64,000 bases of DNA from Carpediemonas membranifera BICM. Taxonomy: Eukaryota; Protista; Fornicata. A program made the position numbers and the translations under genes. This document shows, piece by piece, positions 1-43,859 of this stretch. Under the pieces are notes generated by a model, which worked only from the letters and a program-made list of their open reading frames with translations, had not been told where the DNA came from and made no database searches. How positions within the stretch are numbered: the first letter of the stretch is position 1; every line of letters starts with the position of its first letter. The DNA lies in contig JAHDYR010000037.1 in NCBI GenBank assembly GCA_019828565.1, forward strand, positions 1 to 64,000, written 5' to 3'.

Positions 1-426
1 AATCAATCGAGATCTCTGACGATGACGAGCCGCCGCAGCTCCTGCACCCCACCAACGCATAGCCAGGACGTCCACCCCAGGCCAAGCCAGTGCCCGCCTC
101 AGCCCGCGTCTCCTATTGTGCACGACATCGAGAGCATATCGATCAGCTCGCCCTCTGCCTCGCCGTCCTCGCAAGGATACGTGCCCCCAAAGCGTTTGCG
201 GACTACACCACCGCGCCGTATCCTCCCCAAGCGCTCGACTAGGGCCGCACCATCTCCCCTAGAGAGTCAGCCCCGCACCTGCCCGCAAGCTCGGCCGCCC
301 TCGCTCTACCAAGTTCATCATCTACTCGGACAGCGAGGGACGACGACGAACATCCCAAGAAGCCGAAGGGGTGCATCACACCGAAGAAGGAAGGACGGAC
401 TTGCTTCAATCGTACAGAACTATTAG
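1..426 (+). pseudogene. 3' end of a family-A helicase/OTU ORF copy (runs off the left edge, frameshifted)
   Basis: Near-identical to ~20596-21029 (…IEISDDDEP…PIVHDIESISISSPS…), with homopolymer indels. Confidence 0.75.
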
Positions 427-1473
427 GTATCAAGTGGCAGTGGCCACATGTAAATGATTAACGAACGTAGAATGGGTAGAGCGGGGGCTACGGTCGGCTG
501 CGCCTCCCTCTGCCCCCTGCACCCCCGGAATTGAAGACGGGGGCTCGTTCCTCCGGCTTCGTTCGGCTTCGCTCCGCTCGGGCGCTCGTCGCTACGCTCC
601 TCCCGCCCTCCGCTACGCTACGCCTCTCTACGCCTCCGTCACTCTCTCTGCCCCCTGCGACCCCCGCGGACTCCGCCCATGGCCTGTAACTCCGTCAGAT
701 CACCCCACAAATTTTTGAATCTCGGGCTGTGATTTACATATGAAAAATAAATACCCCCATCCTCCTCAGAGCATGTAATTATGTATTTTAGTGCGCACCC
801 GTGTTCTCTTCCATTCCATACGCGTCACTCTAGACGTATTCACTCACCATGGACACAAAAAGGCTCTATAAAAATTTGTTGAGGGGCCTAAATCAAAAAT
901 CGGGGAAAATAACGTTCCTACACGTACGCAACATGATACAGCAGTATACTCTGTTTAGCTCCAGCATCAATCCTTGAGGCCAGTAAAACCGGTCTTTGAA
1001 CGCGGTTCGCCAGATTCGGATGGATATCGTGACTCAATCACACTGCGAGAGACTTTCAAAATTCCAAATCCCGCAGCCCTGAAGCCTCAGGCCTCGTGCT
1101 GTACTGCACAAGAAGTTAGCGATCGCGACTTTTGTCCTATAACTATTTATGCATAATTCAATGTAAAGACGACGGAGTTGAATAGAGCTTAGGGCGGCGC
1201 CTCCGAGCTGACACGCACAGCTATCCAGAGAAGCAATCCGCAGCCCTGAACGCCGTCTGTAAGCATGTGCTCTGACCTCAAAGTCCAATTTTGAGGGTCC
1301 CGTTTTTTGAGCGGGAAAATTTAGTATAAAAATATTTGCGTTGTCCCAGATTTCAATGCATGTTCGAAGGACCCCTGGGGTAGGCTACACGCTGCATGTG
1401 TCGCCTTCCCTGGCAGGGAGCTAGGGGTCCCGTACCGGGACCCCCAAAATCCGCAATACCTTACCATAACTTA

Positions 1474-3218
1474 GGTTCGAATCCCTCCTGGCACATCCTT
1501 TTTGGACCTCGGCCATATCTCAGTCAATATTGGTCGTCATGCCTTGCAACTGCCCAGATTAGCTTGGCTAGCCCTAAAGAACACATGGCAGTCAGATTTA
1601 TTCAAGTTGTTTTGGACATGACGAACGCTAAAGCCGTTCAGGACTGAGCCACTGGCGCCGAGCGCAAACAGCGCATCCACGACCGCCCAATAGCGGTCCG
1701 GGTTCTTGGACAGCACCTTGGCGCGCTGGAGTGCCTTGTGCATGACCTGGGACGGTACAGCAGCCGCAGCGCCCCCTGCACCCCACCAACGCATAGCCAT
1801 GAGATGTCCACCCCAGGCCAAGCCAGTGCCCGCCCCTCAGCCCGCGTCTCCTATTGTGCACGACATCGAGAGCATATCGATCAGCTCGCCCTCTGCCTCG
1901 CCGTCCTCGCAAGGATACGTGCCCCCAAAGCGTTTGCGGACTACACCACCGCGCCGTATCCTCCCCAAGCGCTCGACTAGGGCCGCACCATCTCCCCTGA
2001 GAGAGTCAGCCCCCGCACCTGCCCGCAAGCTCGGCCGCCCTCGCTCTACCAAGTTCATCATCTACTCGGACAGCGAGGACGACGACGAACATCCCAGAAG
2101 CCGAAGGGGTGCATCACACCGAAGAAGGAAGGACGGACTTGCTTCAATCGTAAGAACTATTAGTATCGAAGTGGCAGTGGCCACATGTAAATGATTAACG
2201 AACGTAGAATGGGTAGAGCGGGGGCTACGGTCGGCTGCGCCTCCCTCTGCCCCCTGCACCCCCGGAATTGAAGACGGGGGGGCTCCGTTCGTTCCTCCGG
2301 CTTCGTTCGGCTTCGCTCCGCTCCGGGCGCTCGTCGCGTTGCTCCTCCCGCCCTCCGCTACGCTACGCCTCTCTACGCCTCCGTCACTCTCTCTGCCCCC
2401 TGCGACCCCCGCGGACTCCGCCCATGGCCTGTAACTACGTCAGATCACCCCACAAATTTTTGAATCTCGGGCTGTGATTTACATATGAAAAAATAAATAC
2501 CCCCATCCTCCTCAGAGCATGTAATTATGTATTTTAGTGCGCACCCGTGTTCTCTTCCATTCCATACGCGTCACTCTAGACGTATTCACTCACCATGGAC
2601 ACAAAAAGGCTCTATAAAAATTTGTTGAGGGCCTAAATCAAAAATCGGGGAAAATAACGTTCCTACACGTACGCAACATGATACAGCAGTATACTCTGTT
2701 TAGCTCCAGCATCAATCCTTGAGGCCAGTAAAACCGGTCTTTGAACGCGGTTCGCCAGATTCGGATGGATATCGTGACTCAATCACACTGCGAGAGACTT
2801 TCAAAAATTCCAAATCCAGCAGCCCGGAAGCCTCAGGCCTCGTGCTGTACTGCACAAGAAGTTAGCGATCGCGACTTTTGTCCTATAACTATTTATGCAT
2901 AATTCAATGTAAAGACGACGGAGTTGAATAGAGCTTAGGGCGGCGCCTCCGAGCTGACACGCACAGCTATCCAGAGAAGCAATCCGCAGCCCTGAACGCC
3001 GTCTGTAAGCATGTGCTCTGACCTCAAAGTCCAATTTTGAGGTCCCGTTTTCGAGCGGGAAAATTTAGTATAAAAATATTTGCGTTGTCCCAGATTTCAA
3101 TGCATGTTCGAAGGACCCTGGGGTAGGCTACACGCTGCATGTGTCGCCTTCCCTGGCAGGGGCCCAGGGGTCCCGTACCGGGACCCCCCAAAATCCGCAA
3201 TACCTTACCATAACTTAC
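1474..3218 (+). mobile_element. Non-autonomous family-A derivative (unit B), truncated at the tRNA-like B box
   Basis: Same sequence as 6643-8391; begins GGTTCGAATCCC directly after the previous unit's ...ATAACTTA end. Confidence 0.8.
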
Positions 3219-6200
3219 AGGCCCCATAGAGCACATTTCACTCTTCACCTCGCTGAAACCATGGTCAAGTTGATCCAGCCACGTCGCTCAGCTTCAATCA
3301 CGCAAGGCGAGCGGACAACGAGTAGACCACACCCAGATGGAGGCTGAATCGCGACATGTGCGCTCTACAGCTGTCTATAGGCCCGCACGCATACATGGGT
3401 GCGAAGTCCCAGCCCTCCAATGTCACGTATTGACGAGGTCGTCAAAGCATATCTTTACGCAATCTTTTGACCTCAAGTCGTGGACTGCCCGGGGGTAGTT
3501 CGGGGCGCTGAACACGCTGGTGAAGTCCCCTATGCTCCATCTCCGCCCCATCACCGCCAAATTCCGAGGATCGAATTCCGCGACTCAAACCCAGAGTTGC
3601 AGACCTCAGCGTTCACAACCACCCCCGGCTAGACACGTTCTAGGCCCCATAGAGCACATTTCACTCTTCATCTCGCTGAAACCATGGTCAAGTTGATCCA
3701 GCCACGTCGCTCAGCTTCAATCACGCAAGGCGAGCGGACAACGAGTAGACCACACCCAGATGGAGGCTGAATCGCGACATGTGCGCTCTACAGCTGTCTA
3801 TAAGCCCGCACGCATACATGGGTGCGAAGTCCCAGCCCTCCAATGTCACGTATTGACGAGGTCGTCAAAAGCATATCTTTACGCAATCTTTTGACCTCAA
3901 GTCGTGGACTGCCCGGGGGTAGTTCGGGGCGCTGAACACGCTGGTGAAGTCCCCTATGCTCCATCTCCGCCCCATCACCGCCAAATTCCGAGGATCGAAT
4001 TCCGCGACTCAAAACCCAGAGTTGCAGACCTCAGCGTTCACAACCACCCCCGGCTAGACACGTTCTAGGCCCCATAGAGCACATTTCACTCTTCATCTCG
4101 CTGAAACCATGGTCAAGTTGATCCAGCCACGTCGCTCAGCTTCAATCACGCAAGGCGAGCGGACAACGAGTAGACCACACCCAGATGGAGGCTGAATCGC
4201 GACATGTGCGCTCTACAGCTGTCTATAAGCCCGCACGCATACATGGGTGCGAAGTCCCAGCCCTCCAATGTCACGTATTGACGAGGTCGTCAAAGCATAT
4301 CTTTACGCAATCTTTTTGACCTCAAGTCGTGGACTGCCCGGGGGTAGTTCGGGGCGCTGAACACGCTGGTGAAGTCCCCTATGCTCCATCTCCGCCCCAT
4401 CACCGCCAAATTCCGAGGATCGAATTCCGCGACTCAAACCCAGAGTTGCAGACCTCAGCGTTCACAACCACCCCCGGCTAGACACGTTCTAGGCCCCATA
4501 GAGCACATTTCACTCTTCATCTCGCTGAAACCATGGTCAAGTTGATCCAGCCACGTCGCTCAGCTTCAATCACGCAAGGCGAGCGGACAACGAGTAGACC
4601 ACACCCAGATGGAGGCTGAATCGCGACATGTGCGCTCTACAGCTGTCTATAAGCCCGCACGCATACATGGGTGCGAAGTCCCAGCCCTCCAATGTCACGT
4701 ATTGACGAGGTCGTCAAAGCATATCTTTACGCAATCTTTTGACCTCAAGTCGTGGACTGCCCGGGGGTAGTTCGGGGCGCTGAACACGCTGGTGAAGTCC
4801 CCTATGCTCCATCTCCGCCCCATCACCGCCAAATTCCGAGGATCGAATTCCGCGACTCAAACCCAGAGTTGCAGACCTCAGCGTTCACAACCACCCCCGG
4901 CTAGACACGTTCTAGGCCCCATAGAGCACATTTCACTCTTCATCTCGCTGAAACCATGGTCAAGTTGATCCAGCCACGTCGCTCAGCTTCAATCACGCAA
5001 GGCGAGCGGACAACGAGTAGACCACACCCAGATGGAGGCTGAATCGCGACATGTGCGCTCTACAGCTGTCTATAGGCCCGCACGCATACATGGGTGCGAA
5101 GTCCCAGCCCTCAAATGTCACGTATTGACGAGGTCGTAAAAGCATATCTTTACTCAATCTTTTGACCTCAAGTCGTGGACTGCCCGGGGGTAGTTCGGGG
5201 CGCTGAACACGCTGGTGAAGTCCCCTATGCTCCATCTCCGCCCCATCACCGCCAAATTCCGAGGATCGAATTCCGCGACTCAAACCCAGAGTTGCAGACC
5301 TCAGCGTTCACAACCACCCCCGGCTAGACACGTTCTAGGCCCCATAGAGCACATTTCACTCTTCACCTCGCTGAAACCATGGTCAAGTTGATCCAGCCAC
5401 GTCGCTCAGCTTCAATCACGCAAGGCGAGCGGACAACGAGTAGACCACACCCAGATGAAGGCTGAATCGCGACATGTGCGCTCTACAGCTGTCTATAGGC
5501 CCGCACGCATACATGGGTGCGAAGTCCCAGCCCTCCAATGTCACGTATTGACGAGGTCGTCAAAGCATATCTTTACGCAATCTTTTGACCTCAAGTCGTG
5601 GACTGCCCGGGGGTAGTTCGGGGCGCTGAACACGCTGGTGAAGTCCCCTATGCTCCATCTCCGCCCCATCACCGCCAAATCCCGGGGATCGAATTCCGCG
5701 ACTCAAACCCAGAGTTGCAGACCTCAGCGTTCACAACCACCCCCGGCTAGACACGTTCTAGGCCCCATAGAGCACATTTCACTCTTCACCTCGCTGAAAC
5801 CATGGTCAAGTTGATCCAGCCACGTCGCTCAGCTTCAATCACGCAAGGCGAGCGGACAACGAGTAGACCACACCCAGATGAAGGCTGAATCGCGACATGT
5901 GCGCTCTACAGCTGTCTATAGGCCCGCACGCATACATGGGTGCGAAGTCCCAGCCCTCCAATGTCACGTATTGACGAGGTCGTCAAAGCATATCTTTACG
6001 CAATCTTTTTGACCTCAAGTCGTGGACTGCCCGGGGGTAGTTCGGGGCGCTGAACACGCTGGTGAAGTCCCCTATGCTCCATCTCCGCCCCATCACCGCC
6101 AAATCCCGGGGATCGAATTCCGCGACTCAAACCCAGAGTTGCAGACCTCAGCGTTCACAACCACCCCCGGCTAGACACGTTCTAGGCCCCATAGAGCACA

Positions 6201-6518
6201 TTTCACTCTTCACCTCGCTGAAACCATGGTCAAGTTGATCCAGTCACGTCGCTCAGCTTCAATCACGCAAGGCGAGCGGACAACGAGTAGACCACACCCA
6301 GATGAAGGCTGAATCGCGACATGTGCGCTCTACAGCTGTCTATAGGCCCGCACGCATACATGGGTGCGAAGTCCCAGCCCTCCAATGTCACGTATTGACG
6401 AGGTCGTCAAAGCATATCTTTACTCAATCTTTTTGACCTCAAGTCGTGGACTGCCCGGGGGTAGTTCGGGGCGCTGAACACGCTGGTGAAGTCCCCTATG
6501 CTCCATCTCCGCCCCATC
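3219..6518. repeat. Tandem ~423-bp satellite, ~7.8 copies
   Basis: AGGCCCCATAGAGCAC recurs at 3219, 3642, 4067, 4491, 4914, 5337, 5760 and 6184; copies are near-identical. Confidence 0.95.
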
Positions 6519-6591
6519 TCCGCCTGGCCAGATCATGATGCGTCAATTGTCACATATCTGGAAGTCAAGTCTGTTGTAACGCGTCAGGTTT

Positions 6592-6674
6592 GAGCCATGG
6601 TGTAGATGGTATAGCAGATGTTGGTGAATACAAGAGGTGGTAGGTTCGAATCCCTCCTGGCACATCCTTTTTTT
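6592..6674 (+). pseudogene. Degenerate tRNA-like Pol III unit (A box, B box, oligo-T); copies at 9624-9706, 16045-16125 and partial at 1474-1504
   Basis: A box TGGTGTAGATGG, B box GGTTCGAATCC, imperfect acceptor stem (GAGCCA/TGGCAC), followed by T5-7. Stems have mismatches, so the isotype cannot be assigned. Confidence 0.6.
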
Positions 6675-8391
6675 GGACCTCGGCCATATCTCAGTCAATA
6701 TTGGTCGTCATGCCTTGCAACTGCCCAGATTAGCTTGACTAGCCCTAAAGAACACATGGCAGTCAGATTTATTCAAGTTGTTTGGACATGACGAACGCTA
6801 AGCCGTTCAGGACTGAGCCACTGGCGCCGAGCGCAAACAGCGCATCCACGACCGCCCAATAGCGGTCCGGGTTCTTGGACAGCACCTTGGCGCGCTGGAG
6901 TGCCTTGTGCATGACCTGGGACGGTACAGCAGCCGCAGCGCCCCCTGCACCCCACCAACGCATAGCCATGAGATGTCCACCCCAGGCCAAGCCAGTGCCC
7001 GCCCCTCAGCCCGCGTCTCCTATTGTGCACGACATCGAGAGCATATCGATCAGCTCGCCCTCTGCCTCGCCGTCCTCGCAAGGATACGTGCCCCCAAAGC
7101 GTTTGCGGACTACACCACCGCGCCGTATCCTCCCCAAGCGCTCGACTAGGGCCGCACCATCTCCCCTGAGAGAGTCAGCCCCCCGCACCTGCCCGCAAGC
7201 TCGGCCGCCCTCGCTCTACCAAGTTCATCATCTACTCGGACAGCGAGGACGACGACGAACATCCCAAGAAGCCGAAGGGGTGCATCACACCGAAGAAGGA
7301 AGGACGGACTTGCTTCAATCGTAAGAACTATTAGTATCGAAGTGGCAGTGGCCACATGTAAATGATTAACGAACGTAGAATGGGTAGAGCGGGGGCTACG
7401 GTCGGCTGCGCCTCCCTCTGCCCCCTGCACCCCCGGAATTGAAGACGGGGGCTCCGTTCATTCCTCCGGCTTCGTTCGGCTTCGCTCCGCTCCGGGCGCT
7501 CGTCGCTACGCTCCTCCCGCCCTCCGCTACGCTACGCCTCTCTACGCCTCCGTCACTCTCTCTGCCCCCCTGCGACCCCCCGCGGACTCCGCCCATGGCC
7601 TGTAACTACGTCAGATCACCCCACAAATTTTTGAATCTCGGGCTGTGATTTACATATGAAAAAATAAATACCCCCATCCTCCTCAGAGCATGTAATTATG
7701 TATTGTAGTGCGCACCCGTGTTCTCTTCCATTCCATACGCGTCACTCTAGACGTATTCACTCACCATGGACACAAAAAGGCTCTATAAAAAAATTTGTTG
7801 AGGGCCTAAATCAAAAATCGGGGAAAATAACGTTCCTACACGTACGCAACATGATACAGCAGTATACTCTGTTTAGCTCCAGCATCAATCCTTGAGGCCA
7901 GTAAAACCGGTCTTTGAACGCGGTTCGCCAGATTCGGATGGATATCGTGACTCAATCACACTGCGAGAGACTTTCAAAAATTCCAAATCCAGCAGCCCGG
8001 AAGCCTCAGGCCTCGTGCTGTACTGCACAAGAAGTTAGCGATCGCGACTTTTGTCCTATAACTATTTATGCATAATTCAATGTAAAGACGACGGAGTTGA
8101 ATAGAGCTTAGGGCGGCGCCTCCGAGCTGACACGCACAGCTATCCAGAGAAGCAATCCGCAGCCCTGAACGCCGTCTGTAAGCATGTGCTCTGACCTCAA
8201 AGTCCAATTTTGAGGTCCCGTTTTGAGCGGGAAAATTTAGTATAAAAATATTTGCGTTGTCCCAGATTTCAATGCATGTTCGAAGGACCCCTGGGGTAGG
8301 CTACACGCTGCATGTGTCGCCTTCCCTGGCAGGGGCCCAGGGGTCCCGGTACGGGACCCCCCAAAATCCGCAATACCTTACCATAACTTAC

Positions 8392-9550
8392 TCTTCATCT
8401 CGCTGAAACCATGGTCAAGTTGATCCAGCCACGTCGCTCAGCTTCAATCACGCAAGGCGAGCGGACAACGAGTAGACCACACCCAGATGGAGGCTGAATC
8501 GCGACATGTGCGCTCTACAGCTGTCTATAGGCCCGCACGCATACATGGGTGCGAAGTCCCAGCCCTCCAATGTCACGTATTGACGTGGTCGTCAAAGCAT
8601 ATCTTTACGCAATCTTTTGACCTCAAGTCGTGGACTGCCCGGGGGTAGTTCGGGGCGCTGAACACGCTGGTGAAGTCCCCTATGCTCCATCTCCGCCCCA
8701 TCACCGCCAAATCCCGGGGATCGAATTCCGCGACTCAAACCCAGAGTTGCAGACCTCAGCGTTCACAACCACCCCCGGCTAGACACGTTCTAGGCCCCAT
8801 AGAGCACATTTCACTCTTCACCTCGCTGAAACCATGGTCAAGTTGATCCAGCCACGTCGCTCAGCTTCAATCACGCAAGGCGAGCGGACAACGAGTAGAC
8901 CACACCCAGATGAAGGCTGAATCGCGACATGTGCGCTCTACAGCTGTCTATAAGCCCGCACGCATACATGGGTGCGAAGTCCCAGCCCTCCAATGTCACG
9001 TATTGACGAGGTCGTCAAAGCATATCTTTACGCAATCTTTTTGACCTCAAGTCGTGGACTGCCCGGGGGTAGTTCGGGGCGCTGAACACGCTGGTGAAGT
9101 CCCCTATGCTCCATCTCCGCCCCATCACCGCCAAATCCCGGGGATCGAATTCCGCGACTCAAACCCAGAGTTGCAGACCTCAGCGTTCACAACCACCCCC
9201 GGCTAGACACGTTCTAGGCCCCATAGAGCACATTTCACTCTTCACCTCGCTGAAACCATGGTCAAGTTGATCCAGTCACGTCGCTCAGCTTCAATCACGC
9301 AAGGCGAGCGGACAACGAGTAGACCACACCCAGATGAAGGCTGAATCGCGACATGTGCGCTCTACAGCTGTCTATAGGCCCGCACGCATACATGGGTGCG
9401 AAGTCCCAGCCCTCCAATGTCACGTATTGACGAGGTCGTCAAAGCATATCTTTACTCAATCTTTTTGACCTCAAGTCGTGGACTGCCCGGGGGTAGTTCG
9501 GGGCGCTGAACACGCTGGTGAAGTCCCCTATGCTCCATCTCCGCCCCATC
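8392..9550. repeat. Tandem ~423-bp satellite, ~2.7 copies
   Basis: Unit starts at 8792 and 9216; same monomer as 3219-6518. Confidence 0.95.
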
Positions 9551-11421
9551 TCCGCCTGGCCAGATCATGATGCGTCAATTGTCACATATCTGGAAGTCAA
9601 GTCTGTTGTAACGCGTCAGGTTTGAGCCATGGTGTAGATGGTATAGCAGATGTTGGTGAATACAAGAGGTGGTAGGTTCGAATCCCTCCTGGCACATCCT
9701 TTTTTTGGACCTCGGCCATATCTCAGTCAATATTGGTCGTCATGCCTTGCAACTGCCCAGATTAGCTTGACTAGCCCTAAAGAACACATGGCAGTCAGAT
9801 TTATTCAAGTTGTTTGGACATGACGAACGCTAAGCCGTTCAGGACTGAGCCACTGGCGCCGAGCGCAAACAGCGCATCCACGACCGCCCAATAGCGGTCC
9901 GGGTTCTTGGACAGCACCTTGGCGCGCTGGAGTGCCTTGTGCATGACCTGGGACGGTACAGCAGCCGCAGCGCCCCCTGCACCCCACCAACGCATAGCCA
10001 TGAGATGTCCACCCCAGGCCAAGCCAGTGCCCGCCCCTCAGCCCGCGTCTCCTATTGTGCACGACATCGAGAGCATATCGATCAGCTCGCCCTCTGCCTC
10101 GCCGTCCTCGCAAGGATACGTGCCCCCAAAGCGTTTGCGGACTACACCACCGCGCCGTATCCTCCCCAAGCGCTCGACTAGGGCCGCACCATCTCCCCTG
10201 AGAGAGTCAGCCCCCGCACCTGCCCGCAAGCTCGGCCGCCCTCGCTCTACCAAGTTCATCATCTACTCGGACAGCGAGGACGACGACGAACATCCCAAGA
10301 AGCCGAAGGGGTGCATCACACCGAAGAAGGAAGGACGGACTTGCTTCAATCGTAAGAACTATTAGTATCGAAGTGGCAGTGGCCACATGTAAATGATTAA
10401 CGAACGTAGAATGGGTAGAGCGGGGGCTACGGTCGGCTGCGCCTCCCTCTGCCCCCCTGCACCCCCGGAATTGAAGACGGGGGGCTCCGTCATTCCTCCG
10501 GCTTCGTTCGGCTTCGCTCCGCTCCGGGCGCTCGTCGCGTTGCTCCTCCCGCCCTCCGCTACGCTACGCCTCTCTACGCCTCCGTCACTCTCTCTGCCCC
10601 CTGCGACCCCCCGCGGACTCCGCCCATGGCCTGTAACTACGTCAGATCACCCCACAAATTTTTGAATCTCGGGCTGTGATTTACATATGAAAAAATAAAT
10701 ACCCCCATCCTCCTCAGAGCATGTAATTATGTATTGTAGTGCGCACCCGTGTTCTCTTCCATTCCATACGCGTCACTCTAGACGTATTCACTCACCATGG
10801 ACACAAAAAGGCTCTATAAAAATTTGTTGAGGGCCTAAATCAAAAATCGGGGAAAATAACGTTCCTACACGTACGCAACATGATACAGCAGTATACTCTG
10901 TTTAGCTCCAGCATCAATCCTTGAGGCCAGTAAAACCGGTCTTTGAACGCGGTTCGCCAGATTCGGATGGATATCGTGACTCAATCACACTGCGAGAGAC
11001 TTTCAAAAATTCCAAATCCAGCAGCCCGGAAGCCTCAGGCCTCGTGCTGTACTGCACAAGAAGTTAGCGATCGCGACTTTTTGTCCTATAACTATTTATG
11101 CATAATTCAATGTAAAGACGACGGAGTTGAATAGAGCTTAGGGCGGCGCCTCCGAGCTGACACGCACAGCTATCCAGAGAAGCAATCCGCAGCCCTGAAC
11201 GCCGTCTGTAAGCATGTGCTCTGACCTCAAAGTCCAATTTTGAGGTCCCGTTTTTGAGCGGGAAAATTTAGTATAAAATATTTGCGTTGTCCCAGATTTC
11301 AATGCATGTTCGAAGGACCCCTGGGGTAGGCTACACGCTGCATGTGTCGCCTTCCCTGGCAGGGGCCCAGGGGTCCCGTACCGGGACCCCCCAAAATCCG
11401 CAATACCTTACCATAACTTAC
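8392..11421 (+). mobile_element. Non-autonomous unit B copy (~2.7 satellite repeats)
   Basis: Same organisation as 3219-8391; ends ...CATAACTTAC. Confidence 0.8.
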
Positions 11422-27015: not shown

Positions 27016-27049
27016 TAAATAGAGAAGAGTTGCCCATTGGTTGTCAGAC

Positions 27050-31174: not shown

Positions 31175-31181
31175 CTTACCT

Positions 31182-34800: not shown

Positions 34801-36651
34801 ACGTTTACTCTCGAACATGTCGCTGGCGAGGCTAACACGGTAGCAGACGCCCTATCTCGTGTCCTCCCCGACCTCAACGTCGACACTGTCTACGCTGTGC
34901 ACGTGAACGGGAGAGGCGAGGACTTCGTCATGATCGACCCACAAGCTGAGCTCACCAAGGTGCACAACACCGCGGTTGGTCATGTGGGCCCCCCCGAGAT
35001 GATACGCCGTCTGCGAAAGGCGGGCGTCCAGTGGCCCGGCATGTGGGAGGATGCCCGAGCTTTCTTCACAACGTGCACCGAGTGCCAGCGTGTCCGCCCA
35101 GGCCAGCGCTTGCCGGTCCCCCAACACCCAGACCTGCGGACAATACCCTTCCAGTCCGTCCAGGTCGACACCCTGGGCCCGTTTGCCCAGGACGAACACG
35201 GCCAGAAGTACGTCGTCGTGATCGTAGACGCGTTCTCTCGACACGTTTCTCTATTCCCGACGCACACTACGTCAGCAAAAGACGCCGCCGACGCAATCTA
35301 CAAGTTCTGCGCCGCGTTCGGCGTGCCGGAGTTCATACAGACGGACCAAGGCTCGCAGTACAAGAACAGTTTAATCGAAGAGCTCACAAGAAGCCTCACG
35401 ATCGAACACCGCTTCTCTACGCCGTACCACCCCCAAGCAAACGGAAAGGTCGAACGCATGAATGCTGAGATCGCCCGTCACATGAGGACGCTCGTAGATG
35501 AACACGAAGCCGCTTGGAGCGACATGCTCCCGCAAGTGGCCCTCATACTCAACTCGCGAGTACACCCCGTGACCCATCAGTCCCCGTTGACCCTCCTCTT
35601 TGGTCACGACGGCTTCCACAAGGATACTCAGAGTCGGGAGGAGCGCTACACACGAGCCAGGAACTCTGTCTCCCGCGACCATGCCAAGAAGCTCGGCCGT
35701 GTTGCGTCCACGACCTACCGAGCTTATACCAGCGGGAGCCTCGTACTGCTGGCCCCCATCAAGCCGATGAAGCTGGCCATGAAGTGGCGCGGCCCGTTCC
35801 GCGTCATACAGGAGGGGAAGGTCAAGGGATCGGTCATCATTCAGTCCCTCACCGACGACGCCGACCAGTTCACCGTCGCGTCAGAGCGCCTCCGGCCTTT
35901 CCACCGCCGCCGAGGCCAGTCACTCGCAGAACTTCGGGCACTCGTAGCCCGCCAAGACCGTGAGTTCGAGGTCGAGTCCGTCAAGGACCTCGACATGAAG
36001 GGTCGCCGTCTCCGTGTCCGCTGGAAGGGTTATGAGCCCGAGGAGGACTCCTGGATCCCGCTAAACCAGGAGAACTACCGCCTGCAAGCCCTGGACGCCT
36101 ATCTACTGGATCACCCGACGGCTGTGGCACCCCTCGAGGCGCTGGCTCGTCGTCGCCGCTGGCGATGATGATCCCCATCTGATCGGGACCTTAGCACGTC
36201 CTAAACTATAAACTGCTGTCTGAGAAGCTTGATGTTGCTTAATTGAGACTAATGGACCGCTTGCGAGGAAGAATCCCGTCGAAGATCCGAAGCTTTCGTG
36301 AAAGTTCTCGTATCTCGCCAACGAGGGCCTATTGAGGCCAATGGAGGTCATTTTCAGCACCTAGGAGCTCTTTAGCTCAATAACCTCCTTCAATGGAGTT
36401 GTTCGTCTTCACGCTCAACTATCTAATCAAACCATCGCATTTGATGGGTTTCGGATGAAATATCATAGACCAGTCCTCGCCGCCGCGCCCGTTACTCGTG
36501 GTCGTTACCACTGGGAGGGAAGTGTCAGCGCGGCACTTCTATCAAATATTTATTTGATTGATGATCCGATCCGATCCCCGGGCAGGGTCCCGAATCGTCT
36601 TTTTGTTTTGCTTGTAAAGCTTCACCCCCCGTTTCGTCTGCGAAACGAACA
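31829..36651 (+). mobile_element. Intact Ty3/Gypsy chromovirus (family G1), identical 129-bp LTRs, 4-bp TSD GAAG
   Basis: LTRs TGTCAG…GAACA at 31829-31957 and 36523-36651; PPT GGGAGGGAAG; empty site visible at 26991-27000. Confidence 0.95.
31975..36168 (+). CDS. Gag-Pol polyprotein (PR, RT, RNase H, integrase, chromodomain)
   Basis: IIDTGAS, YLDDVLI, LFTDAS, HHCC and DDE integrase (QTDQGSQY, ANGKVER), chromodomain EFEVESV…VRWKGY…DSWIP. Confidence 0.95.
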   Translation: MQNVPVPVPKLALQELSPKTWANFKRTMIQFKIFYPAATYAAFLDAELQGALEVQHNVSLASQSDDDVIRWVNQLLAPRDPQDLRLRLEAVKCQVDANHAVSRANLIRAYARAFTDVLGSAEFMATPPATPEADESILAGNTDGTEPEPPADTTVPAASEITSASRAHQRIFAQGLRPAAFRDAVDYAQRVERPSSLQDLIQLTLKIADEDAEAREKAQRFGYYAGRGHAPTGPQRQGPITPYRPKPLTGPNPGRQDQPRNNPDQRRQTFAQPRESPGNFRAPDYRAGRRAWNRENGSLRPARGNTARQSAPRVVNTLDNGEQVEDHEVFLLDGDTSASTGPLTVEAAIGDISMRAIIDTGASVTCITEPLAHMLLEAKSAKLVAREPITATPAFGSTLSVDEFIETSLTATLVGSPVHTTIIAAVIPGQSQKVLIGTDTLRSLGVLCKDELFLKLSAQPDNPKDDDIPLPVFSIAPATEDPLSLIQIPNDDLRPEIVELVNQYAELFSDIPPEGANVPPMHIPIAEDAPLVQSAPRRLAPQARDAVDAECERLLQAGIIEPSQGPWASPIVVVGKKDGRMRLCVDYTQINRLTPPDNFPLPNIREFLRAAAGCTVFASLDLKQGYHQAPLREEDRPLSAFVTPDGYFQYRRVPFGLTRAPSYFQRIMQTVLAPVLHRGVEVYLDDVLIYARSPKEFMTILGCVFELLRKARLRLGAAKCTLGASEITSVGFIMDKQGIRVTEDRIKALTELRSPCNLKELRMVLGKFNYVARHLPQAQKHLATLSELLAGVPAKAGSKNRSKTVTITWEARHEHALTCLKEQVRSRVTLAYPDLSKEWHLFTDASTQGVGGVLIQGRPDAPDAEVVAFFAKSFTTTQKAWSTYEQELYGILHALSSSELTPLLKCHPKLHVHTDHRNLVFIRKKYPQNAKIARWRITMNEFTFTLEHVAGEANTVADALSRVLPDLNVDTVYAVHVNGRGEDFVMIDPQAELTKVHNTAVGHVGPPEMIRRLRKAGVQWPGMWEDARAFFTTCTECQRVRPGQRLPVPQHPDLRTIPFQSVQVDTLGPFAQDEHGQKYVVVIVDAFSRHVSLFPTHTTSAKDAADAIYKFCAAFGVPEFIQTDQGSQYKNSLIEELTRSLTIEHRFSTPYHPQANGKVERMNAEIARHMRTLVDEHEAAWSDMLPQVALILNSRVHPVTHQSPLTLLFGHDGFHKDTQSREERYTRARNSVSRDHAKKLGRVASTTYRAYTSGSLVLLAPIKPMKLAMKWRGPFRVIQEGKVKGSVIIQSLTDDADQFTVASERLRPFHRRRGQSLAELRALVARQDREFEVESVKDLDMKGRRLRVRWKGYEPEEDSWIPLNQENYRLQALDAYLLDHPTAVAPLEALARRRRWR

Positions 36652-37992
36652 GAAGGCCGAGAATGACATAATATATAGAGAAGAGTTGCCCATTGGTTGC
36701 CAGACGGGGGGCTCCGGTCGCTCCTCCGGCTTCGTTCGGCTTCGCTTCGCTCGTCGCTACGCTCCTCCCGCCCTCCGCTACGCTACGCCTCTCTACGCCT
36801 CCGTCACTCCCTCTGCCCCCCTGCGACCCCCCGCGGACTCCGCTTCCGTCATCAAGAGTGTGTTCGGCCACATATTGGTTTTGACCTCACCTGCTGTACG
36901 CCGGACTCGAACCCAGTCCTCGCGAATCAAAATTCAGTTCTCGTCCGCCGGGCATTTGCGATCGAAACGAAAGTCCATTCCCCAGAGATACAGGCCCGCA
37001 AACGCGATTCGCGATACTCATTTCACTTAAAGCCAAAAAAAAATCCATTTTTCAATTACGCGCGAACTAAGCTCGAATAAGAACCGCCCGTCAAATGCAA
37101 GGTAGCTATGGCTATGGCACTTAGATAGCCAGAGTTTCAGCCCGATCGGTCGAATTCGCACTTTTAGTGCAAGCCAAAAAGTGCCACTCAATTCCCCAGC
37201 CGTCCACCGATCGCCCACAACGACAGTGGTATCACACTCCCCAAAGACTCTAGCATGCATGCTATATGCCCGCTTTCATCGGGCTACCTCCGGTATATGC
37301 GGACTCGAACCTCGGAACATGGTATGATTCCGTTTTGAATTTAAGCACACCCAGGAATTTAGCGAAATATCTAAGTGGCGTGGGAGGTCCCAGGTAACCA
37401 CTGATCAAGACCGGGCAGTGCTGGAGCTCTAGCTCAACTGGAAGATATAGCACTGGGGTCAAAGTTCTCGCGTACTGACCTTTTTTGGGCACCCCAGATC
37501 TCTAGATTCGGAAGATCGAATCTCGGGTCCGATGATGGCGATCATACTGGCCCGGCCGGTAGGTAAGGGGCAGGTGTAGAGCGTAGTGTCAGAGTGCACA
37601 CAGCGGTCAGGGACCAGCGTTGAAAAAAAGTCCACTTATATATATACTGTTTACCTTTACAGTGAATCTACCTGTTAGATTTTCTGTTATTGTCCATTTT
37701 ATCGTTTCGTCTTAACCTGCACGGCGAAATGCTCAAACCAGGCAAGGAGTCAGAGCCAGAGCTTCTTTCCATGCTCTAAGTACATCATATGGACTCTCAA
37801 GAAGACCTTCGTTTATCTCTAAATAGCTTAAATTTAATGAATACTTCATTTCTGAGCAAGAAATTGTAGATTATCTAGCGTTTTGAGGTCGAAGATAATC
37901 TAGGGTTTAGCAAAGATAATCTAGGGATGTTGACAGCATGAAACAAGCGAGGAAAGAGCAAGTTCACCTCAGTCGGCCAACCAAATCCACAG

Positions 37993-39318
37993 GTGTCCCT
38001 TGAGACGTTCAAGTCCCGTTGTAACTTTGTTGCGCGCACCGAAGTCGACCACATCGACATCCGGTCCTATGCCACCAGGGCAGACGCGCGCCTGAAAGCG
38101 AGCCCGATCATTCCGCCAGATGTCAAGATCACAGACTTCGTTGAGCTTAAGCTTCTCATGGACGGGTCTAACGCTATGCAGGACGAAATGTCCCTCCCAG
38201 ACGGCACTAAGGGCATCAGACCGAAGTCTCGCACTTTCGTTAACGGACGAGAAGAAAACACGAAGGCACCATGGTATGTTTCCACCACTGACGACAGGTA
38301 CAGGATCATCGGCGAGACTGTCAGCGACTCATTGCCGATAGAGCCGCCGCAAGCACGATTCATGTGGGTTGATAGCGAGTCGGAACCCGAGTCGCCCACC
38401 CAAGACGTCACAGCTTCACTGATTGTCCCAACCAGCCCTGACACGCCCGAGCCAGAGCATCATTCACAGACAACTGCCCCACAAGATAAGCTTCTGCAAC
38501 CCACCTCCACATGTGGGCGAAGATCTTCAAGGCGGACAATCATCGTCGACGACGACGAGGAGGAATTCGCAGAACCAGCAAAGCTGTCATACAAGCAACC
38601 GAGTAAGCGATCATCTACACGCTCTGGGACACGTTGGTCTAACCGACTAGTCACCGACGAGTCAGGAACGCGAGACATTGTCCCATGGAACATGAGGATC
38701 ATTGAGTCAGCCCCAGACGGCGACTGTGCCATCCACTCGGTCAAGCAAGTATCAAAGGCATGGGGAAGTCTCTCCACTTCCCTCGTCCGTCTGCTAGTTG
38801 CGAGATTAATCGAGGAGAATCCTCATATGTGTCCACGTGCGTGGAACAAGGCCGATAGAGACGATATGCTCGCTCGTGCACGCGACGGTAGGTTTCTGAA
38901 CGATGGAATCGTCTGGCGCGCACTGATGCACGAGATGACCGAGGAATCGTCGTCCAGATTATATCAGTACACTCCAGTACTGGACGACGATCACGGTCCG
39001 AAGGCGCTATCAGTGACTGAGTACACATTTGAGAGACAAGGTCCGCTAAGAATCTCGAACACCGGCGTTGTGACCGGAGTATTCGCTCCGGGTACATATT
39101 TCCGAAGCCAACACTACGACTTCTGCAGGCCCATCCGCGACCAAGGTCGACAGGCATTTAGAGAGAATGACCCCATCAGAGCGATTGAGATAGATGCGCC
39201 GCCACCAGCCCAGCCAAGAAGGTCTTCTCGCACAAGCAAGCAGGTCACCAAACCCATGGAACCCCCCACCAAAGCCGCGCAGAGGACGCCCACGGAAGGC
39301 ACCCGCATCGCCAGTTGA
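37993..39318 (+). CDS. OTU-like cysteine protease domain protein (start uncertain; basic tail may continue by frameshift into 39315-39509)
   Basis: ESAPDGDCAIHSV…QHYD resembles the OTU Cys and His boxes and aligns by eye with the C-termini of the two helicase ORFs. Confidence 0.65.
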   Translation: MSLETFKSRCNFVARTEVDHIDIRSYATRADARLKASPIIPPDVKITDFVELKLLMDGSNAMQDEMSLPDGTKGIRPKSRTFVNGREENTKAPWYVSTTDDRYRIIGETVSDSLPIEPPQARFMWVDSESEPESPTQDVTASLIVPTSPDTPEPEHHSQTTAPQDKLLQPTSTCGRRSSRRTIIVDDDEEEFAEPAKLSYKQPSKRSSTRSGTRWSNRLVTDESGTRDIVPWNMRIIESAPDGDCAIHSVKQVSKAWGSLSTSLVRLLVARLIEENPHMCPRAWNKADRDDMLARARDGRFLNDGIVWRALMHEMTEESSSRLYQYTPVLDDDHGPKALSVTEYTFERQGPLRISNTGVVTGVFAPGTYFRSQHYDFCRPIRDQGRQAFRENDPIRAIEIDAPPPAQPRRSSRTSKQVTKPMEPPTKAAQRTPTEGTRIAS

Positions 39319-39563
39319 AGTCGACCCAGCATTGGACTCCGGATACCGCATGGAGCACGCGTAGAAGAGGTAAGAAGAAGAAGCCAGCAACCAAGACGCC
39401 ACCCAAACACAATACACCGACGGCTGAAAAGTCGTTTGACGCTCGACGCCCTCACAAGGACTCCCCACCGAACAAGTCAACACGGACCAAGCGTGCGAAA
39501 TCGGATTAATGTTAAATACATACGGTTCAAGTAAAGCTCTGCGAATGCGATCACACGCCTATA

Positions 39564-39929
39564 ATGGAACAAAGTGTCCAGCATTGCAAACGACATCATA
39601 CGCAACTTTCTCCACTCGATTCGAGAAGCACAAATACGATGGGACAGCATCAGCCTATCGCAAAACGGCCTCGTGGCCGTCCTAAAAAGCAAGCATTACC
39701 TGAAATCCCACCTGATGTTGGAACACAAACAGTTCCGACAGAACACGTTCCAATACGAGAAAGACGGCGCACATTGGCCACGAAATATAACAAGATCACG
39801 CTTATCCCCGACACTTCCTCAAGCGCTTTCAAGCCACCAACCACGATCATCCCGAAGCCCCCCAAACCAACGCCACGCAAGGAAACCGACTCGGAGCCCG
39901 TCGAACTGAGCATAAAACTCGAGCAATAG
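39564..39929 (+). CDS. Small basic AT-hook protein
   Basis: KRPRGRPKK AT-hook core; the C-terminus is also present at ~28321-28398. Confidence 0.45.
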   Translation: MEQSVQHCKRHHTQLSPLDSRSTNTMGQHQPIAKRPRGRPKKQALPEIPPDVGTQTVPTEHVPIRERRRTLATKYNKITLIPDTSSSAFKPPTTIIPKPPKPTPRKETDSEPVELSIKLEQ

Positions 39930-40733
39930 AACGCAGCCAATCGCCGCACGTAATCGCGCCTCCTTATCATTTCGGGGGGGCTCCGGTCGCTCCTCCGGCT
40001 TCGTTCGGCTTCGCTCCGCTCCGGGCGCTCGTCGCTACGCTCCTCCCGCCCTCCGCTACGCTACGCCTCTCTACGCCTCCGTCACTCTCTCTGCCCCCCT
40101 GCGACCCCCCGCGGACCTCCCAGCCACACACAACCAGTCACTCACCTTCAAAGCAGCATAAATACTCACCGTCGTCTCATTTCGTCATCGCACTTTATGG
40201 CTTCCCAAGCAGAACTCACAATGCATCATCTGACCAAGCATAGTATGACGCCATAACGCGTTCCAGCATCATAACGTAGCATTTCGTGATCATGACGTTC
40301 ATTTCAGATGAAGTCGTCATTTTTCAGAATTGCACTATCGATTACTCGATGGCCATAACTCGGATCGAAAAACGAAATAGCAAACCTTCATCTACATCTA
40401 AAACTACGTCGTTCTATACCTACACATTCTTTCCATCATTCGTTTGAGAGGGTTTTTTTGGTGTCAAAAAATCTTGTATTTAGCGAAAATTTAGTAGCTG
40501 CCTCGACCGCACCCTATGCCACTAAGAAGCGTGGCCAGTTGCTAAGAGAACGCATGGCCCAGTCCCGAGTTCTGCGCCCCCGACCATGAGCTTCCCGACA
40601 CCCACACCCAACCCGTCGTTAATTAATTTTCGCCATCAACCCCCGCCATCAAGCTCACATAGGTTGGTGCATGCGTGTATGAGCCGGCTTGCGCTAGTCT
40701 CCTCCACGTCGTCTGGTCGGGTATACCCCGGAG

Positions 40734-43510
40734 TGTGGTGAACGTAGGATTCACAGGGGAGCTGAACTGATTTATAAACTGCACTGACTTGATCACTACA
40801 CTGCCCCCACGGCCCGGAGCCAAAGGTGAGGACAGGACATGATAATGAAGAGAGAGTCAGGGCAAAACCGAAGCGGACCGTGACTTGGAGGTTGGTGTGC
40901 CACGTGCTTTTGGTCAATAGTGAAGTCGAACGTCGTTGCTGAGAACGCTGATGTCGAACAAAGATGGGGAATGTAAGAGTGTCGAGATGTGGTCAGGAAG
41001 AGCGTGGACGTTGGCAAGGCCGATCGTCAGGTGCGCCAAAGCGGCATGCACCTGACAGCCCTGCCCCCACGGCCCGAATCTCGAGGGTCGTACTTCTAAT
41101 AGGAAGGATGCATGACGCCGCTGATGTTGTAGCGTCGGTACTGGTGTGGCTACATGAGTCGCGTCTGTCGTCGAGACTTTGTCGCGTGTTAGTATGCCGG
41201 GAGCGTGGGCTGATATATACCCACAGCATGATAGGTGGCATTGGTACCGGGTGAGGTGAGAGGAGAAGTTGCCGCCCGTCACGAGGAAAAGATGCCGAAG
41301 GTTGGCTACGCTAGAGTTGATTGATGACGTCGAGTCACTTGCAAAAACGAGTCTAGCGATGGGTGGTGAGCTAGGTGCGAGAGCTATGGAGAGGGCTCCT
41401 GGCCCAGTTAAGACTTGTCAGCCGGCACCATAAGGGAAGAGCGCTCGTGGAGGGACGTACTGTCGACCGACCCGACGTTTGAACCTGATCTGGGGCTCAG
41501 TGTCGAAGCTGGTCTGGTCAAGAGACATGTTGTCAAGCCTTCGCAAGAGTGAAGCTCGGGTCTTGGGCACGGATGTAGCGCGCGGCCAAGAGCTGAAGGG
41601 GCGCGAGGAACCGGGGCGTATTGTCGCCAGCGTGCAGCTGTCTGTGTTGCGATGTCACCCAGTTGTTGCGCGATAGATGACCCGGCTGGACCCGCGCGGT
41701 GTAGACTCGGCTCATGAAGAGCGCTACTGGGAGTCGTACGCGACAGAGGTCAGTGGGCGCGGTCGGCTGATGTATGCCGAGGCTGCTGATTTCACGGATG
41801 GTCGCCGGGACCGTAACCCGAGGTAAAAGCAAGCCAGTGATAATAGAGAAGGAACGTGCGGACTGTCCAAGAGCAGGCGGTTGACTGCCGCGTGTCGTCG
41901 AGACACATGAGCGTACAGTGTATAGATGCTGCCAAGATATAGGAGCGCTATGTCGCACATGTATGTTCTAAGGAAGCCGCTGAGGCCGCCGTAAGGTTGC
42001 TGTGTCCGCGGATAGCCGTTCAGACTATTGCTCCACGGGGTACAACGGTGGGGTGTCCTGATGTAAGGAGCAGAGGAGTACCGAATGTGTCATGGTGGTT
42101 GCACCCAGCCGTACAGGCTGCTGAAAGTTGAGCTTGGTACTCTGAGGATGTATAGGCAGGAGCTGTCCTGACGTCGAGTCAGTGTCGTGACGTCCTAGCC
42201 TTTGTGAACGTTGGGTGAAGTTATAGAGGCGGATCTGCGACGAGCAGGCCTCAAAACCCAGTCGTTCGTGTGAAATTGTGGCCTGGATATGGAGATATGG
42301 AAAATATCTCGACAGATATGATAGATCTGGAAGTTCGAGCATGTATGTTGTGACGCTGGGCTATCCCGGCTTACTCTGGAGAAAGATATAAAAAGGCGAA
42401 TCTAGATGCCGATGAATCTAGTTGGCGGAGATATAGTGCCGATCAGTCATAAAGAGTGGGTGTGCCCGAACGCTGCTGGGACTGGAGCGTCCGTGGGGCC
42501 CATGAATAACTTGAGGGTCAATTGAATGACTCACTCAGATGAGACCTCTAACCCATGGTCAGGGTCGCGGGCGTGGACGTGAACCAGTTGGTGAAGCCGC
42601 AGCTTGATCGTCTGGCTCGGTAATGGTGGAATAACTCGTCGAAGGCGAAAAGTAGAAATTACCGTGCGTGTGGAGTAGCGGAGCGCGGAAGACGGAAGAA
42701 AGCGCTGAGGAATGCACGAACTAATTAAATGGAACCCGAATTGCGCAGGTATTCGCTAAGGGATACTGGCTGAAGGGAAAAAGACTGAAGAAGTCTATCT
42801 TTGAGGAAACCGAGCTGGAAAATAGCTCCAAGGAGACAGAACTTGCTTCTGTAATGCTCCCAAAGCGTCGCTGCATACTTATTGGCAATCGTAGGGAAGT
42901 ATCAGCAATTGTAGGTGCGGCGCTAGGTGCTCTGACCTAAAACTGCGGAAAAGTAGACACGGTCCGACAGTCAAGGAGTGGGTCGTATGAGGTGTGTGCT
43001 ACCGCATTGCTGACGAATTTCGGTCGGATGGACCGGTCTCCGAGGTGAATGTGGCGTGGAAGCCTTGGCCGTTGATTCTCAGGATGTAGCCATGGAAGAC
43101 TTGCCTCTGTAAGCCTAGACTAGTGTGTGCGGCCATTCTGATGATGATGGTATGAGGACTTAGTGGTTCGGAGACGATACGGACTCGTTGTGCAACAAGG
43201 AATTCTGAACAGCTGCTTCTGCCGAATTACAGTAGCATCGTTGATGCTAGCCCAATAGGCCTTGTCAGTTACCTACAACGAGGCATCTAGTTGTGTTCAA
43301 GTTGCAATTGGACACTTCTAGACGGGAAATTTCCGCAAACGCAATTAGAACGGCAGATACGTGTGATTTCCTATCCAAATTCCGTAAGAAAGCTCTACGT
43401 CAGTTGTTAACCCCTGAACACGCGCGCTTAGGAGTAATATTACTGTGGTGAACGTAGGATTCACAGGGGAGCTGAACTGATTTATAAACTGCACTGACTT
43501 GATCACTACA
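40734..43510 (-). mobile_element. Non-autonomous or degenerate LTR retroelement (family G4), identical 67-bp LTRs, 5-bp TSD CGGAG
   Basis: TGTGGTG…ACTACA at 40734-40800 and 43444-43510; minus-strand PPT GTGGGGGCAG next to the left LTR; no long internal ORF; empty site CCCCGGAGTATGAC at ~29190. Confidence 0.9.
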
Positions 43511-43859
43511 CGGAGTATGACTCTTACCGACTGTCATAAATAACGGAGATTTAAGAATTATAAAAAGTTAGCTCGGAATTGATATGTCGAAGGGTAGGGA
43601 CATATCGTGGTGTATTTGCGTGGCTCTGCGTACTCTCCTCGTCGCGTGAGTCGCCCAAGGAGGTCGGGCAGACCCCCCAAAACGGCTACTCAGAACTTTA
43701 CGACGAATAGAGATAGCCCAGGTCTGACAAATGACTCCGGGGGGTAGTCGGGGGTAAGTAAGGAGAATCTGGAATTACATCTGATATCCACTAAATATTC
43801 GGCGAGATATGAAGGTCGAGTCGAAATGTTCACTTGCTGTATAGTTAATTACTTACCTT

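Follow-up and report, generated by a model that had tools for sequence, protein, structure and literature searches.

The window analyzed here (64,000 nucleotides) comprises positions 1 to 64000 of contig C38 of the free-living protist Carpediemonas membranifera, and its left edge is the contig end. The assembly holds 24,237,836 bases in 69 contigs and was published as 24.2 Mb, 69 contigs, and a GC content of 57.1% (PMC8516963). By self-comparison and direct reading, positions 1 to 43859 are filled by a chain of 12 co-oriented units from three families (A, B, and C) of Helitron-like elements with Rep-Pif1 (RepHel) genes (Table 1), each unit pointing the same constant end, ...TTAC, away from the contig end. 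A preliminary description, made from the letters of this DNA alone, had counted about 12 co-oriented units stopping at TTAC with no host gene among them; twelve plus-strand termini were located, and the chain is free of host genes. Throughout the chain, the strand that carries on from the telomere C-strand is C rich (GC skew of about −0.16).

Contigs C14, C31, and C37 open with perfect (CCTTA)n arrays, 19 to 37 or more units long, and (TAAGG)31 closes contig C24. Because these arrays lie at contig tips in the expected polarity, (TAAGG)n is the genuine telomere repeat of C. membranifera, as had been supposed. A candidate telomerase reverse transcriptase (TERT) was found as one open frame with a telomerase RNA-binding domain (C39:742208-742561). 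Contigs C14 and C24 carry telomeres without Helitron chains, so chains are not obligatory at telomeres.

Family A units ended in ...ATAACTTAC at positions 1473 (TTA, with the C missing), 3218, 8391, 11421, 17838, and 22083; family B units in ...CTGTTTAC at 28008 and 37654; and family C units in ...TAATTAC at 29534, 30354, 31174, and 43852. The chance of three unrelated tails all having TTAC is about (1/256)^2, and the observation was confirmed as real and far above chance. Each ...TTAC end is also in register with the telomere C-strand. Where telomere repeat follows the terminus (marked by a slash), the plus strand would read ...CCATAACTTAC/CTTACC and the minus strand ...GGTAAG/GTAAGTTATGG. 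Counting every family A terminus that could be retrieved, at least 20 different partner sequences were joined to it, with at least 3 for family B and at least 5 for family C. Since so many different partners are joined to the same terminus, ...TTAC is a defined molecular end.

The far ends, by comparison, are arbitrary. They fall within an GGTTCGAATCC box (1474), within a 423-bp satellite in two registers (3219; 8392 and 11422), within the helicase open reading frame (ORF) (17853), within the N terminus of the Rep ORF (22084), and in other places. These are the variable positions first described, except that the box then called tRNA-like has an 11-nt resemblance only; a tRNA origin was rejected after no match was obtained with ARAGORN or Rfam (gathering scores; E value of ≤1 on positions 6400 to 7000). 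Neither poly(A) nor a target-site duplication was present at the unit junctions inspected, as the preliminary description had it.

Four clear fillers of telomere type separate units or close the chain (Table 1), one fewer than the five junctions with extra bases counted earlier; the “CT” at 22084 is part of element B and not a filler. Among the family A junctions retrieved, 11 of 20 had no telomere repeat at all, arbitrary sequence being joined directly, and the other 9 had a stretch of 6 to 25 nt of repeat that kept the phase of the terminal CTTAC in every case. Junction tracts measured 0 to 8 repeats (8 being the maximum in any chain) versus 19 to 37 or more in terminal arrays, and tracts so much shorter indicate that the acceptor ends had short tracts or none. 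Where a filler could be compared with an intact parent copy, 2 to 3 nt overlapped with the repeat, and the free 3' ends finished in AG or AAG. This is the signature of telomerase priming, so those truncated ends were once real chromosome ends. As many of the variable ends are free 3' ends healed by telomerase in this way, the truncation can be put down, at least in part, to erosion or breakage. The short telomerase-like additions that had been proposed to alternate with the units are accordingly present as in-phase fillers on AG and AAG ends.

Among 11 filler-free junctions of known parent, the overlap with the terminus was 2, 0, 2, 0, 0, 1, 0, 2, 3, 1, and 0 nt; microhomology of ≥2 nt in 4 of the 11 has a P value of about 0.01 to 0.02 under chance. 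Both junctions that lack the final C show a TA overlap, and small fillers (A and AACA) occur at some junctions. Three right terminal sequence (RTS) fragments, 20, 28, and 41 nt long, lie between telomere tracts, and each ends at or before the family A hairpin. This hairpin (9-bp GC stem, positions 17787 to 17807, 31 nt before the TTAC end) has a fold z score of −2.7; the terminal stem is weaker in family B, and none is convincing in family C. An architecture of GC stem, A-run, about 20 AT-rich nt, and TTAC is common to the termini of four or five families. Separately, AG directly followed TTAC in 5 of 17 filler-free junctions (about 1 expected), which may point to a preference in target or filler.

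To map chains over the genome, the terminal 300 nt of each tail (A, B, and C) served as queries, the survey of ends covering selected ends among the 138 contig ends plus 350-nt junction windows. Chains were found at eight contig ends with the TTAC end toward the centromere. Those close to a left end, on C38, C37, C31, C26, and the 12.7-kb contig C46, have plus orientation, and those within 11 kb of a right end, on C15 (341,520), C3 (496,590), and C11 (670,655), have minus orientation. The predicted subtelomeric location and uniform polarity therefore held at these eight ends, with two interstitial exceptions (on C1 and C6). On C31 and C37, units 98 to 99% identical to those of the window run straight into telomere arrays, and the outermost units are arbitrary truncations capped directly by telomere. 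Blocks of 3 to 6 kb are 98 to 99.4% identical among C38, C31, C37, and C15, and identical junctions recur on several contigs (the junction of units 1 and 2 on C15 and C31).

No left terminal sequence was found in >25 units on C38, C31, C37, C26, C15, and C11. The one candidate, beside the C31 telomere, was rejected as a long terminal repeat (LTR), since copies of its 34-mer are found across the genome as pairs spaced by about 5.95 kb. The C31 telomere sits immediately on the final 50 nt of an LTR, from which it follows that erosion and telomerase healing act on any subtelomeric sequence. The LTR family with this pair spacing occurs on many contigs and includes a nested copy at C31:21571-27555. 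Also noted were internal telomere tracts, each of about 5 repeats, at C1:1854986, C7:298967, C8:178083, C16:918749, and C33:141520; the upstream flank on the C-strand of these five ends in TTAC, CTAC, or GTAC, and they are candidates for additional element termini or for breaks healed long ago.

The ORF at positions 22084 to 27015 encodes Helitron_like_N and PIF1 domains (Pfam), that at 17853 to 21029 the same protein type cut within the helicase, and that at 37942 to 39318 a match to the C-terminal third of RepHel only. Genome-wide there were 13 RepHel matches, all on chain-bearing contigs. The proteins of families A, B, and C are 34 to 54% identical to one another and, when aligned, retain intact HUH (HYH/HVH/HIH), YxxKY, Walker A (GxGKS), and Walker B (DEA) motifs. 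The ratio of nonsynonymous to synonymous substitution rates (dN/dS) was 0.17 for families B and C compared with each other and 0.25 for a pair of family A copies (dS, 0.067), by which measure the Rep-Pif1 genes are under purifying selection. The unit 7 protein is about 300 N-terminal residues short of family C, and the C26 copy of family B extends at least 504 nt further upstream than the window junction at 22084. The longest unit (C26:6429-15872, 9.4 kb) starts within a truncated satellite.

The C-terminal region of RepHel has a conserved GxC...H cysteine-protease-like motif. Its assignment as an OTU domain found no support (no Pfam match at an E value of ≤10; AlphaFold model unusable, with a predicted local distance difference test score of 40), and no APE domain was found (Pfam). 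An accessory APE endonuclease and/or OTU domain and asymmetric terminal inverted repeats mark Helitron2/Helentron (HLE2) elements, the likeness named in the preliminary description. In the databases, the nearest two proteins bear the name “DNA helicase Pif1 like [Carpediemonas membranifera],” and the Helitron-related genes of this species were described as having no introns and no RNA sequencing signal in log phase (PMC8516963). Outside this genome, the closest RepHel (33% identity, 2191 aa) is on contig JAOPTP010022181.1 of GCA_047518385.1, an assembly with a GC content of 48%. An RTS-like ...CCCAAAA..CCTTAC end and telomere-like CCTTAC-type repeats precede it, which suggests that the telomere association is older than this species. 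Further relatives are far more distant (E value of about 1e-42), and for one of them (P0079) no telomere association was seen at its locus.

The preliminary description held the 3' regions of the three families to be unrelated. Their terminal tails are distinct, but all three carry a sharply bounded, C/T-rich 145-nt module that is 90 to 99% identical among copies (Table 1). On the minus strand the module has several G-runs and GCG(A/T)AGC heptamers, of which the whole chain contains 56 on the minus strand versus 5 on the plus strand (about 15 expected). The oligonucleotide d(GCGAAGC) forms very stable mini-hairpins, which are found at single-strand phage origins. Folding of the module was no better than that of shuffles on either strand with standard DNA parameters; a single-strand origin and a G-quadruplex/Pif1 site are possibilities for its role.

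Two chain units contain nested insertions (Table 1). The Ty3/gypsy element in unit 11 has ≥10 copies, 99 to 100% identical and dispersed over the genome, and the family looks recently active on that ground. Its LTRs, its target-site duplication, and these many dispersed copies rule out its pol as a reverse transcriptase (RT) of the chain. The 2.78-kb insert of unit 12 is missing from the otherwise identical units 8 to 10 and looks like a small nonautonomous LTR-type element. No RT is encoded by any chain unit, including the longest, and no hammerhead, other ribozyme, or tRNA was found in the window (Rfam gathering scores; ARAGORN). The sole RT within the chain is that of the nested Ty3/gypsy element, in agreement with the earlier statement that none belongs to the chain; the combination of RT and hammerhead that had been named as the mark of a Terminon was likewise not seen: the longest units encode no RT, and Rfam gave no hammerhead in the window.

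Table 1. Features of the window and reference copies of the element families on other contigs
Feature	Position	Strand	Description
Unit 1	1..1473	+	Tail of family A, truncated at the contig start; finishes in ...AACTTA without the terminal C; TA microhomology with unit 2
Unit 2	1474..3218	+	Family A, no ORF; 5' end within GGTTCGAATCC box; ends TTAC
Unit 3	3219..8391	+	Family A, no ORF; 423-bp satellite (3219-6524), spacer, A tail
Unit 4	8392..11421	+	Built like unit 3; satellite cut in a different register
Unit 5	11422..17838	+	Built like unit 4; about 11 satellite monomers
Telomere C-strand filler CTTACCTTACCT	17839..17850	+	In phase; added onto a free 3' end finishing in AG
Unit 6	17853..22083	+	Autonomous family A element cut within the Pif1 domain; ORF to 21029, then A tail
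Unit 7	22084..28008	+	Family B Rep-Pif1 element; ORF to 27015; HUH, YxxKY, and Walker motifs present
Unit 8	28009..29534	+	Family C, no ORF
Unit 9	29535..30354	+	Family C, no ORF; 820-bp tandem copy identical to unit 10
Unit 10	30355..31174	+	Family C, no ORF; 820-bp tandem copy identical to unit 9
Telomere-type filler CTTACCT	31175..31181	+	
Unit 11	31183..37654	+	141-bp repeats and B tail; nested Ty3/gypsy LTR element inside
Telomere-type filler	37655..37660	+	
Unit 12	37655..43852	+	Family C with just the C-terminal third of the protein left (ORF 37942-39318), followed by C tail; nested 2.78-kb insert
Telomere-type filler TTACCTT	43853..43859	+	Inner end of chain
Anchor	43860..49775		Dispersed-repeat remnant (43872-44163), then TPR protein, protein kinase, and NUBP-type ATPase genes
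145-nt module	27050..27192	+	Five GCG(A/T)AGC heptamers on the minus strand
145-nt module, other copies (approximate)	545-676, 2272-2421, 7447-7592, 10475-10623, 16898-17040		
145-nt module, other copies (approximate)	21142-21286, 28441-28584, 36700-36840, 39973-40116		
Ty3/gypsy element	31829-36652		4.8 kb; 138-bp LTRs; AAG target-site duplication; pol 31972-36168; nested in unit 11
LTR-type insert	40735-43510		2.78 kb; 67-bp terminal direct repeats (TG...CA); GGAG-type duplication; nested in unit 12
Family A, longest copy	C37:13499-18619		
Family B copies	This window (unit 7) and C26		
Family C copy	C26:8429-14294		

Our preferred reading, which we rate slightly above an even chance, is that these are telomere-specialized Helitron-like elements of at least three families, added one-ended to chromosome ends short of (TAAGG)n. 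Each family encodes a two-tyrosine HUH Rep-Pif1 protein, and the acceptor would be a critically short or eroded chromosome end with most or all of its (TAAGG)n gone. The constant ...TTAC end, one telomere repeat in register, would join the chromosome, and the element would run outward for a variable length. Telomerase would re-cap the new outer end, renewed erosion or breakage may precede the next unit, repeated addition would build the head-to-tail stack, and recombination would copy blocks of the stack between chromosome ends. In outline this agrees with the preliminary description of a DNA-based, polar, telomere-linked Helitron stack alternating with telomerase additions.

The sequence establishes the anatomy, polarity, and location of the chains, the outer ends healed by telomerase, and the intact Rep-Pif1 genes under selection; the dependence on Rep and the joining step are what we infer. 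A Rep-dependent DNA route is favored because the Rep-Pif1 genes are intact and under selection and because neither RT, poly(A), ribozyme, nor transcript was found. Addition to short or eroded ends fits better than random insertion into tracts of 100 to 200 bp, since the acceptors have little or no tract. As to the chemistry, microhomologies, junctions without the final C, and small fillers fit annealing plus fill-in or alternative end joining (alt-EJ) better than precise HUH ligation, and a plus-strand RTS is preferred since a hairpin about 30 nt before the end is the normal Helitron geometry (family A). The joining step that we favor, although we rate it well below an even chance, is that the Rep-released plus strand (3' ...TTAC) anneals over 0 to 5 nt to the 3' end of the G-strand and that a host polymerase extends this G-strand end along it. 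Such a joining step would be a DNA-templated analogue of target-primed reverse transcription.

Four other explanations were weighed. Rep might instead nick the minus strand 5' of GTAA and transfer its bound 5' end to the 3'-OH of the G-strand while Pif1 unwinds a variable length, much as in IS91/ISCR elements. Such a ligation would account for an end that is fixed downstream of the ORF and one that varies on the far side; the G-strand offers the sole free chromosomal 3'-OH, the nick context (...GGTAAG/GTAAG...) equals the telomere repeat, and the minus-biased heptamers (56 versus 5) would suit second-strand priming on the transferred strand. We nonetheless think it unlikely: precise transesterification predicts neither the TA-overlap junctions without C (n = 2), nor the fillers A and AACA, nor microhomologies of 2 to 3 nt, the placement of the family A hairpin about 30 nt before the plus-strand 3' end is the usual Helitron RTS geometry, and variable unwinding is unneeded where far ends are often telomerase-healed free ends. 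Insertion of two-ended Helitrons into the telomere C-strand, followed by terminal deletion and healing that strip the left ends, has been proposed for the sole described telomeric Helitrons, those of Paramecium, which share a telomere-motif end (CCAA), polarity, satellites, and ORF-less derivatives. In-phase repeats after the terminus at 9 of 20 family A junctions would suit insertion of this kind, but the other 11 join arbitrary sequence with no telomere repeat, >25 units on six contigs yielded no left terminal sequence (the sole candidate being an LTR), and proximal tracts of ≤8 repeats, against 19 to 37 or more in terminal arrays, are unlikely if insertion is random, which leaves this account improbable here.

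It is also doubtful that recombination alone produced the chains, that is, that relic Helitrons grew into stacks and spread between subtelomeres only through break-induced replication, unequal exchange, and microhomology-mediated repair. The near-identical 3- to 6-kb blocks on C38, C31, C37, and C15, the junctions repeated on several contigs, the identical 820-bp tandem units, and the lack of RNA sequencing expression of Helitron-related genes (PMC8516963) all speak for it. Recombination can copy junctions, but it gives no reason for three or four unrelated tails each being joined at one exact nucleotide to >25 partners, and a RepHel dN/dS of 0.17 to 0.25 implies protein-dependent propagation. 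We consider least credible, and indeed very improbable, an RNA route like that of Terminons or HeT-A, with telomerase or some other RT copying transcripts that end in ...CUUAC and are paired with the G-overhang. Polarity, 5' truncation, a telomere-complementary 3' end, and microhomology or short copies are marks of target-primed reverse transcription as well, and the genome has active Ty3/gypsy elements and a TERT candidate. The units encode no RT, however; the gypsy pol sits in a nested insertion of integrase type that has LTRs and a target-site duplication; neither a hammerhead, any other Rfam family, poly(A), nor a common 5' start was found; long satellites lie within units; no expression was recorded in published RNA sequencing data (PMC8516963); and copying driven by an RT does not require selection on Rep-Pif1.

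Several points weigh against one-ended addition as we have framed it. The case comes from genome sequence, in which no intermediate, expression, or new insertion was observed. The window has no full-length ORF copy, only 13 RepHel matches exist genome-wide, and, with no left terminal sequence from >25 units, the complete element is not defined. Many units are blocks 98 to 99% identical between contigs; together with the 820-bp tandem units (29535 to 31174), this shows that recombination also shapes the arrays and accounts for much of their growth. The interstitial tracts, short as they are, may have lost length since insertion, healing promoted by a telomere seed rather than abortive synthesis may account for the tiny RTS fragments, and the microhomology excess is drawn from 11 junctions. 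A plus-strand intermediate also leaves the minus-strand GCG(A/T)AGC cluster unexplained. Finally, two chains are interstitial (C1 at 881 to 944 kb and C6 at about 643 kb). On C1 (1.87 Mb), a minus block and a plus block face each other across 5.6 kb of 43 to 52% GC content, and the copies are older (90 to 97% identity). An assembly palindrome was rejected, as no inverted repeat occurs within 931 to 939 kb; candidate origins for the locus are an ancient telomere-to-telomere fusion, a repeat island, and a misjoin. The C6 locus (C6:642301-647300) has a family C unit with the end filler ATTACCTT and, upstream of it, a candidate fourth terminus (9-bp hairpin, about 30 nt, ...CGTTAC, then AACA). Both chains look like fossil end-to-end fusions or misjoins.

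With a single protein that combines a two-tyrosine HUH Rep and a Pif1-family helicase, an RTS hairpin before a conserved 3' end (family A), and no target-site duplication at the junctions inspected, the elements are Helitron-like. Their ends are not those of canonical Helitrons: the 3' end is TTAC and not CTRR, there is no common 5'-TC left end, and partners begin with any base. The preliminary description knew of no Helitron that behaves in this way, a statement superseded by the telomeric Helitrons of Paramecium aurelia, described in November 2025 (bioRxiv 10.1101/2025.11.06.686955). Those are also Rep-Pif1 elements at chromosome ends with the RTS toward the centromere and an absolute orientation bias; in both lineages an RTS stem-loop is followed by a telomere C-strand motif (CCAA there, CTTAC here) and short same-orientation repeats, and there are internal satellites and many ORF-less derivatives, the end polarity here having the C1 and C6 exceptions. 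The Paramecium elements differ in that their left end is defined and telomere repeats flank them on either side, hence the proposed C-strand insertion, and in having ORFs of 9 to 10 kb. In Carpediemonas, complete copies of that kind were not found on C38, C31, C37, C26, C15, or C11, outer ends are arbitrary, over half of the junctions are repeat free, ORFs are about 5 to 6.5 kb, and the supergroup and telomere repeat are other ones.

Subtelomeric Helitron expansions are also described in Hydractinia and Nematostella (PMC11934779), where, as here, Helitron-derived sequence and satellites are enriched near chromosome ends; in the abstract of that report, the pattern is one of local subtelomeric amplification, and no telomere-matched terminus or end attachment is reported. 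Helitron-derived sequence is likewise enriched near chromosome ends in Drosophila biarmipes, as degenerate, randomly oriented fragments that are also pericentromeric (PMC6581046). A literature search yielded no description of this arrangement in Carpediemonas or other metamonads, the genome paper mentioning unexpressed Helitron-related genes (PMC8516963).

The closest retroelement likeness is to HeT-A/TART/TAHRE of Drosophila, whose stacks at chromosome ends, too, are head-to-tail, 5'-truncated, and of uniform polarity, with a constant 3' end as the point of attachment and a telomere-like bias in strand composition. Those are non-LTR elements with gag/RT and poly(A) that replace telomerase, whereas the Carpediemonas elements have a HUH Rep-helicase, termini of ...TTAC without an A-run, no gag, no non-LTR RT, and telomerase active between units. 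Athena/Terminon elements share telomere-complementary 3' ends, stacking with short telomere tracts, and large composite units; their Penelope-type RT and hammerhead motifs were not found here (Rfam gathering scores over the window for the latter). IS91/ISCR elements have a two-tyrosine HUH transposase, a fixed end downstream of the gene, and a variable far end, but they are bacterial, with no helicase fusion and no chromosome-end targeting.

To our knowledge, before 2025 the extension of telomeres by mobile elements was known for retroelements only. The Carpediemonas stacks are a DNA counterpart of the fly telomeric retrotransposons and a second case after Paramecium, in another supergroup (Metamonada) and in a free-living protist. 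They point to true end addition rather than insertion, since the constant, in-register end attaches straight to chromosome ends that are eroded or minimally healed and since a left end was not found. That the terminus equals the host telomere repeat in both lineages (CTTAC and CCAA) suggests convergent tuning of HUH transposons to telomeres, and the informative junctions make the mechanism directly testable. The host is of interest as well: Ku and nonhomologous end joining (NHEJ) are missing in metamonads, alt-EJ is present in C. membranifera, and the species lacks replication and end-joining machinery, including the canonical ORC/Cdc6 initiators (PMC8516963). It is conceivable, although we would not expect it, that in a host without Ku/NHEJ and ORC/Cdc6 a rolling-circle transposon serves as a mutualistic back-up pathway of DNA-templated telomere elongation, with Rep releasing a single-stranded copy whose 3' end imitates the telomerase template, critically short or wholly eroded G-strand ends being extended along that copy over kilobases, and telomerase re-capping the ends.

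On its inner side the chain had been described as ending next to ordinary genes. Host genes do follow (Table 1), after an intervening dispersed-repeat remnant. Beyond them, positions 50860 to 63651 are rich in transposable elements: the ORF at 50860 to 52965 encodes a tyrosine recombinase (Phage_integrase) domain, two further Ty3/gypsy-type pols are present (one with a chromodomain), and a 1.7-kb direct repeat (57831 to 59539 and 61770 to 63478) is 99.9% identical between its copies.

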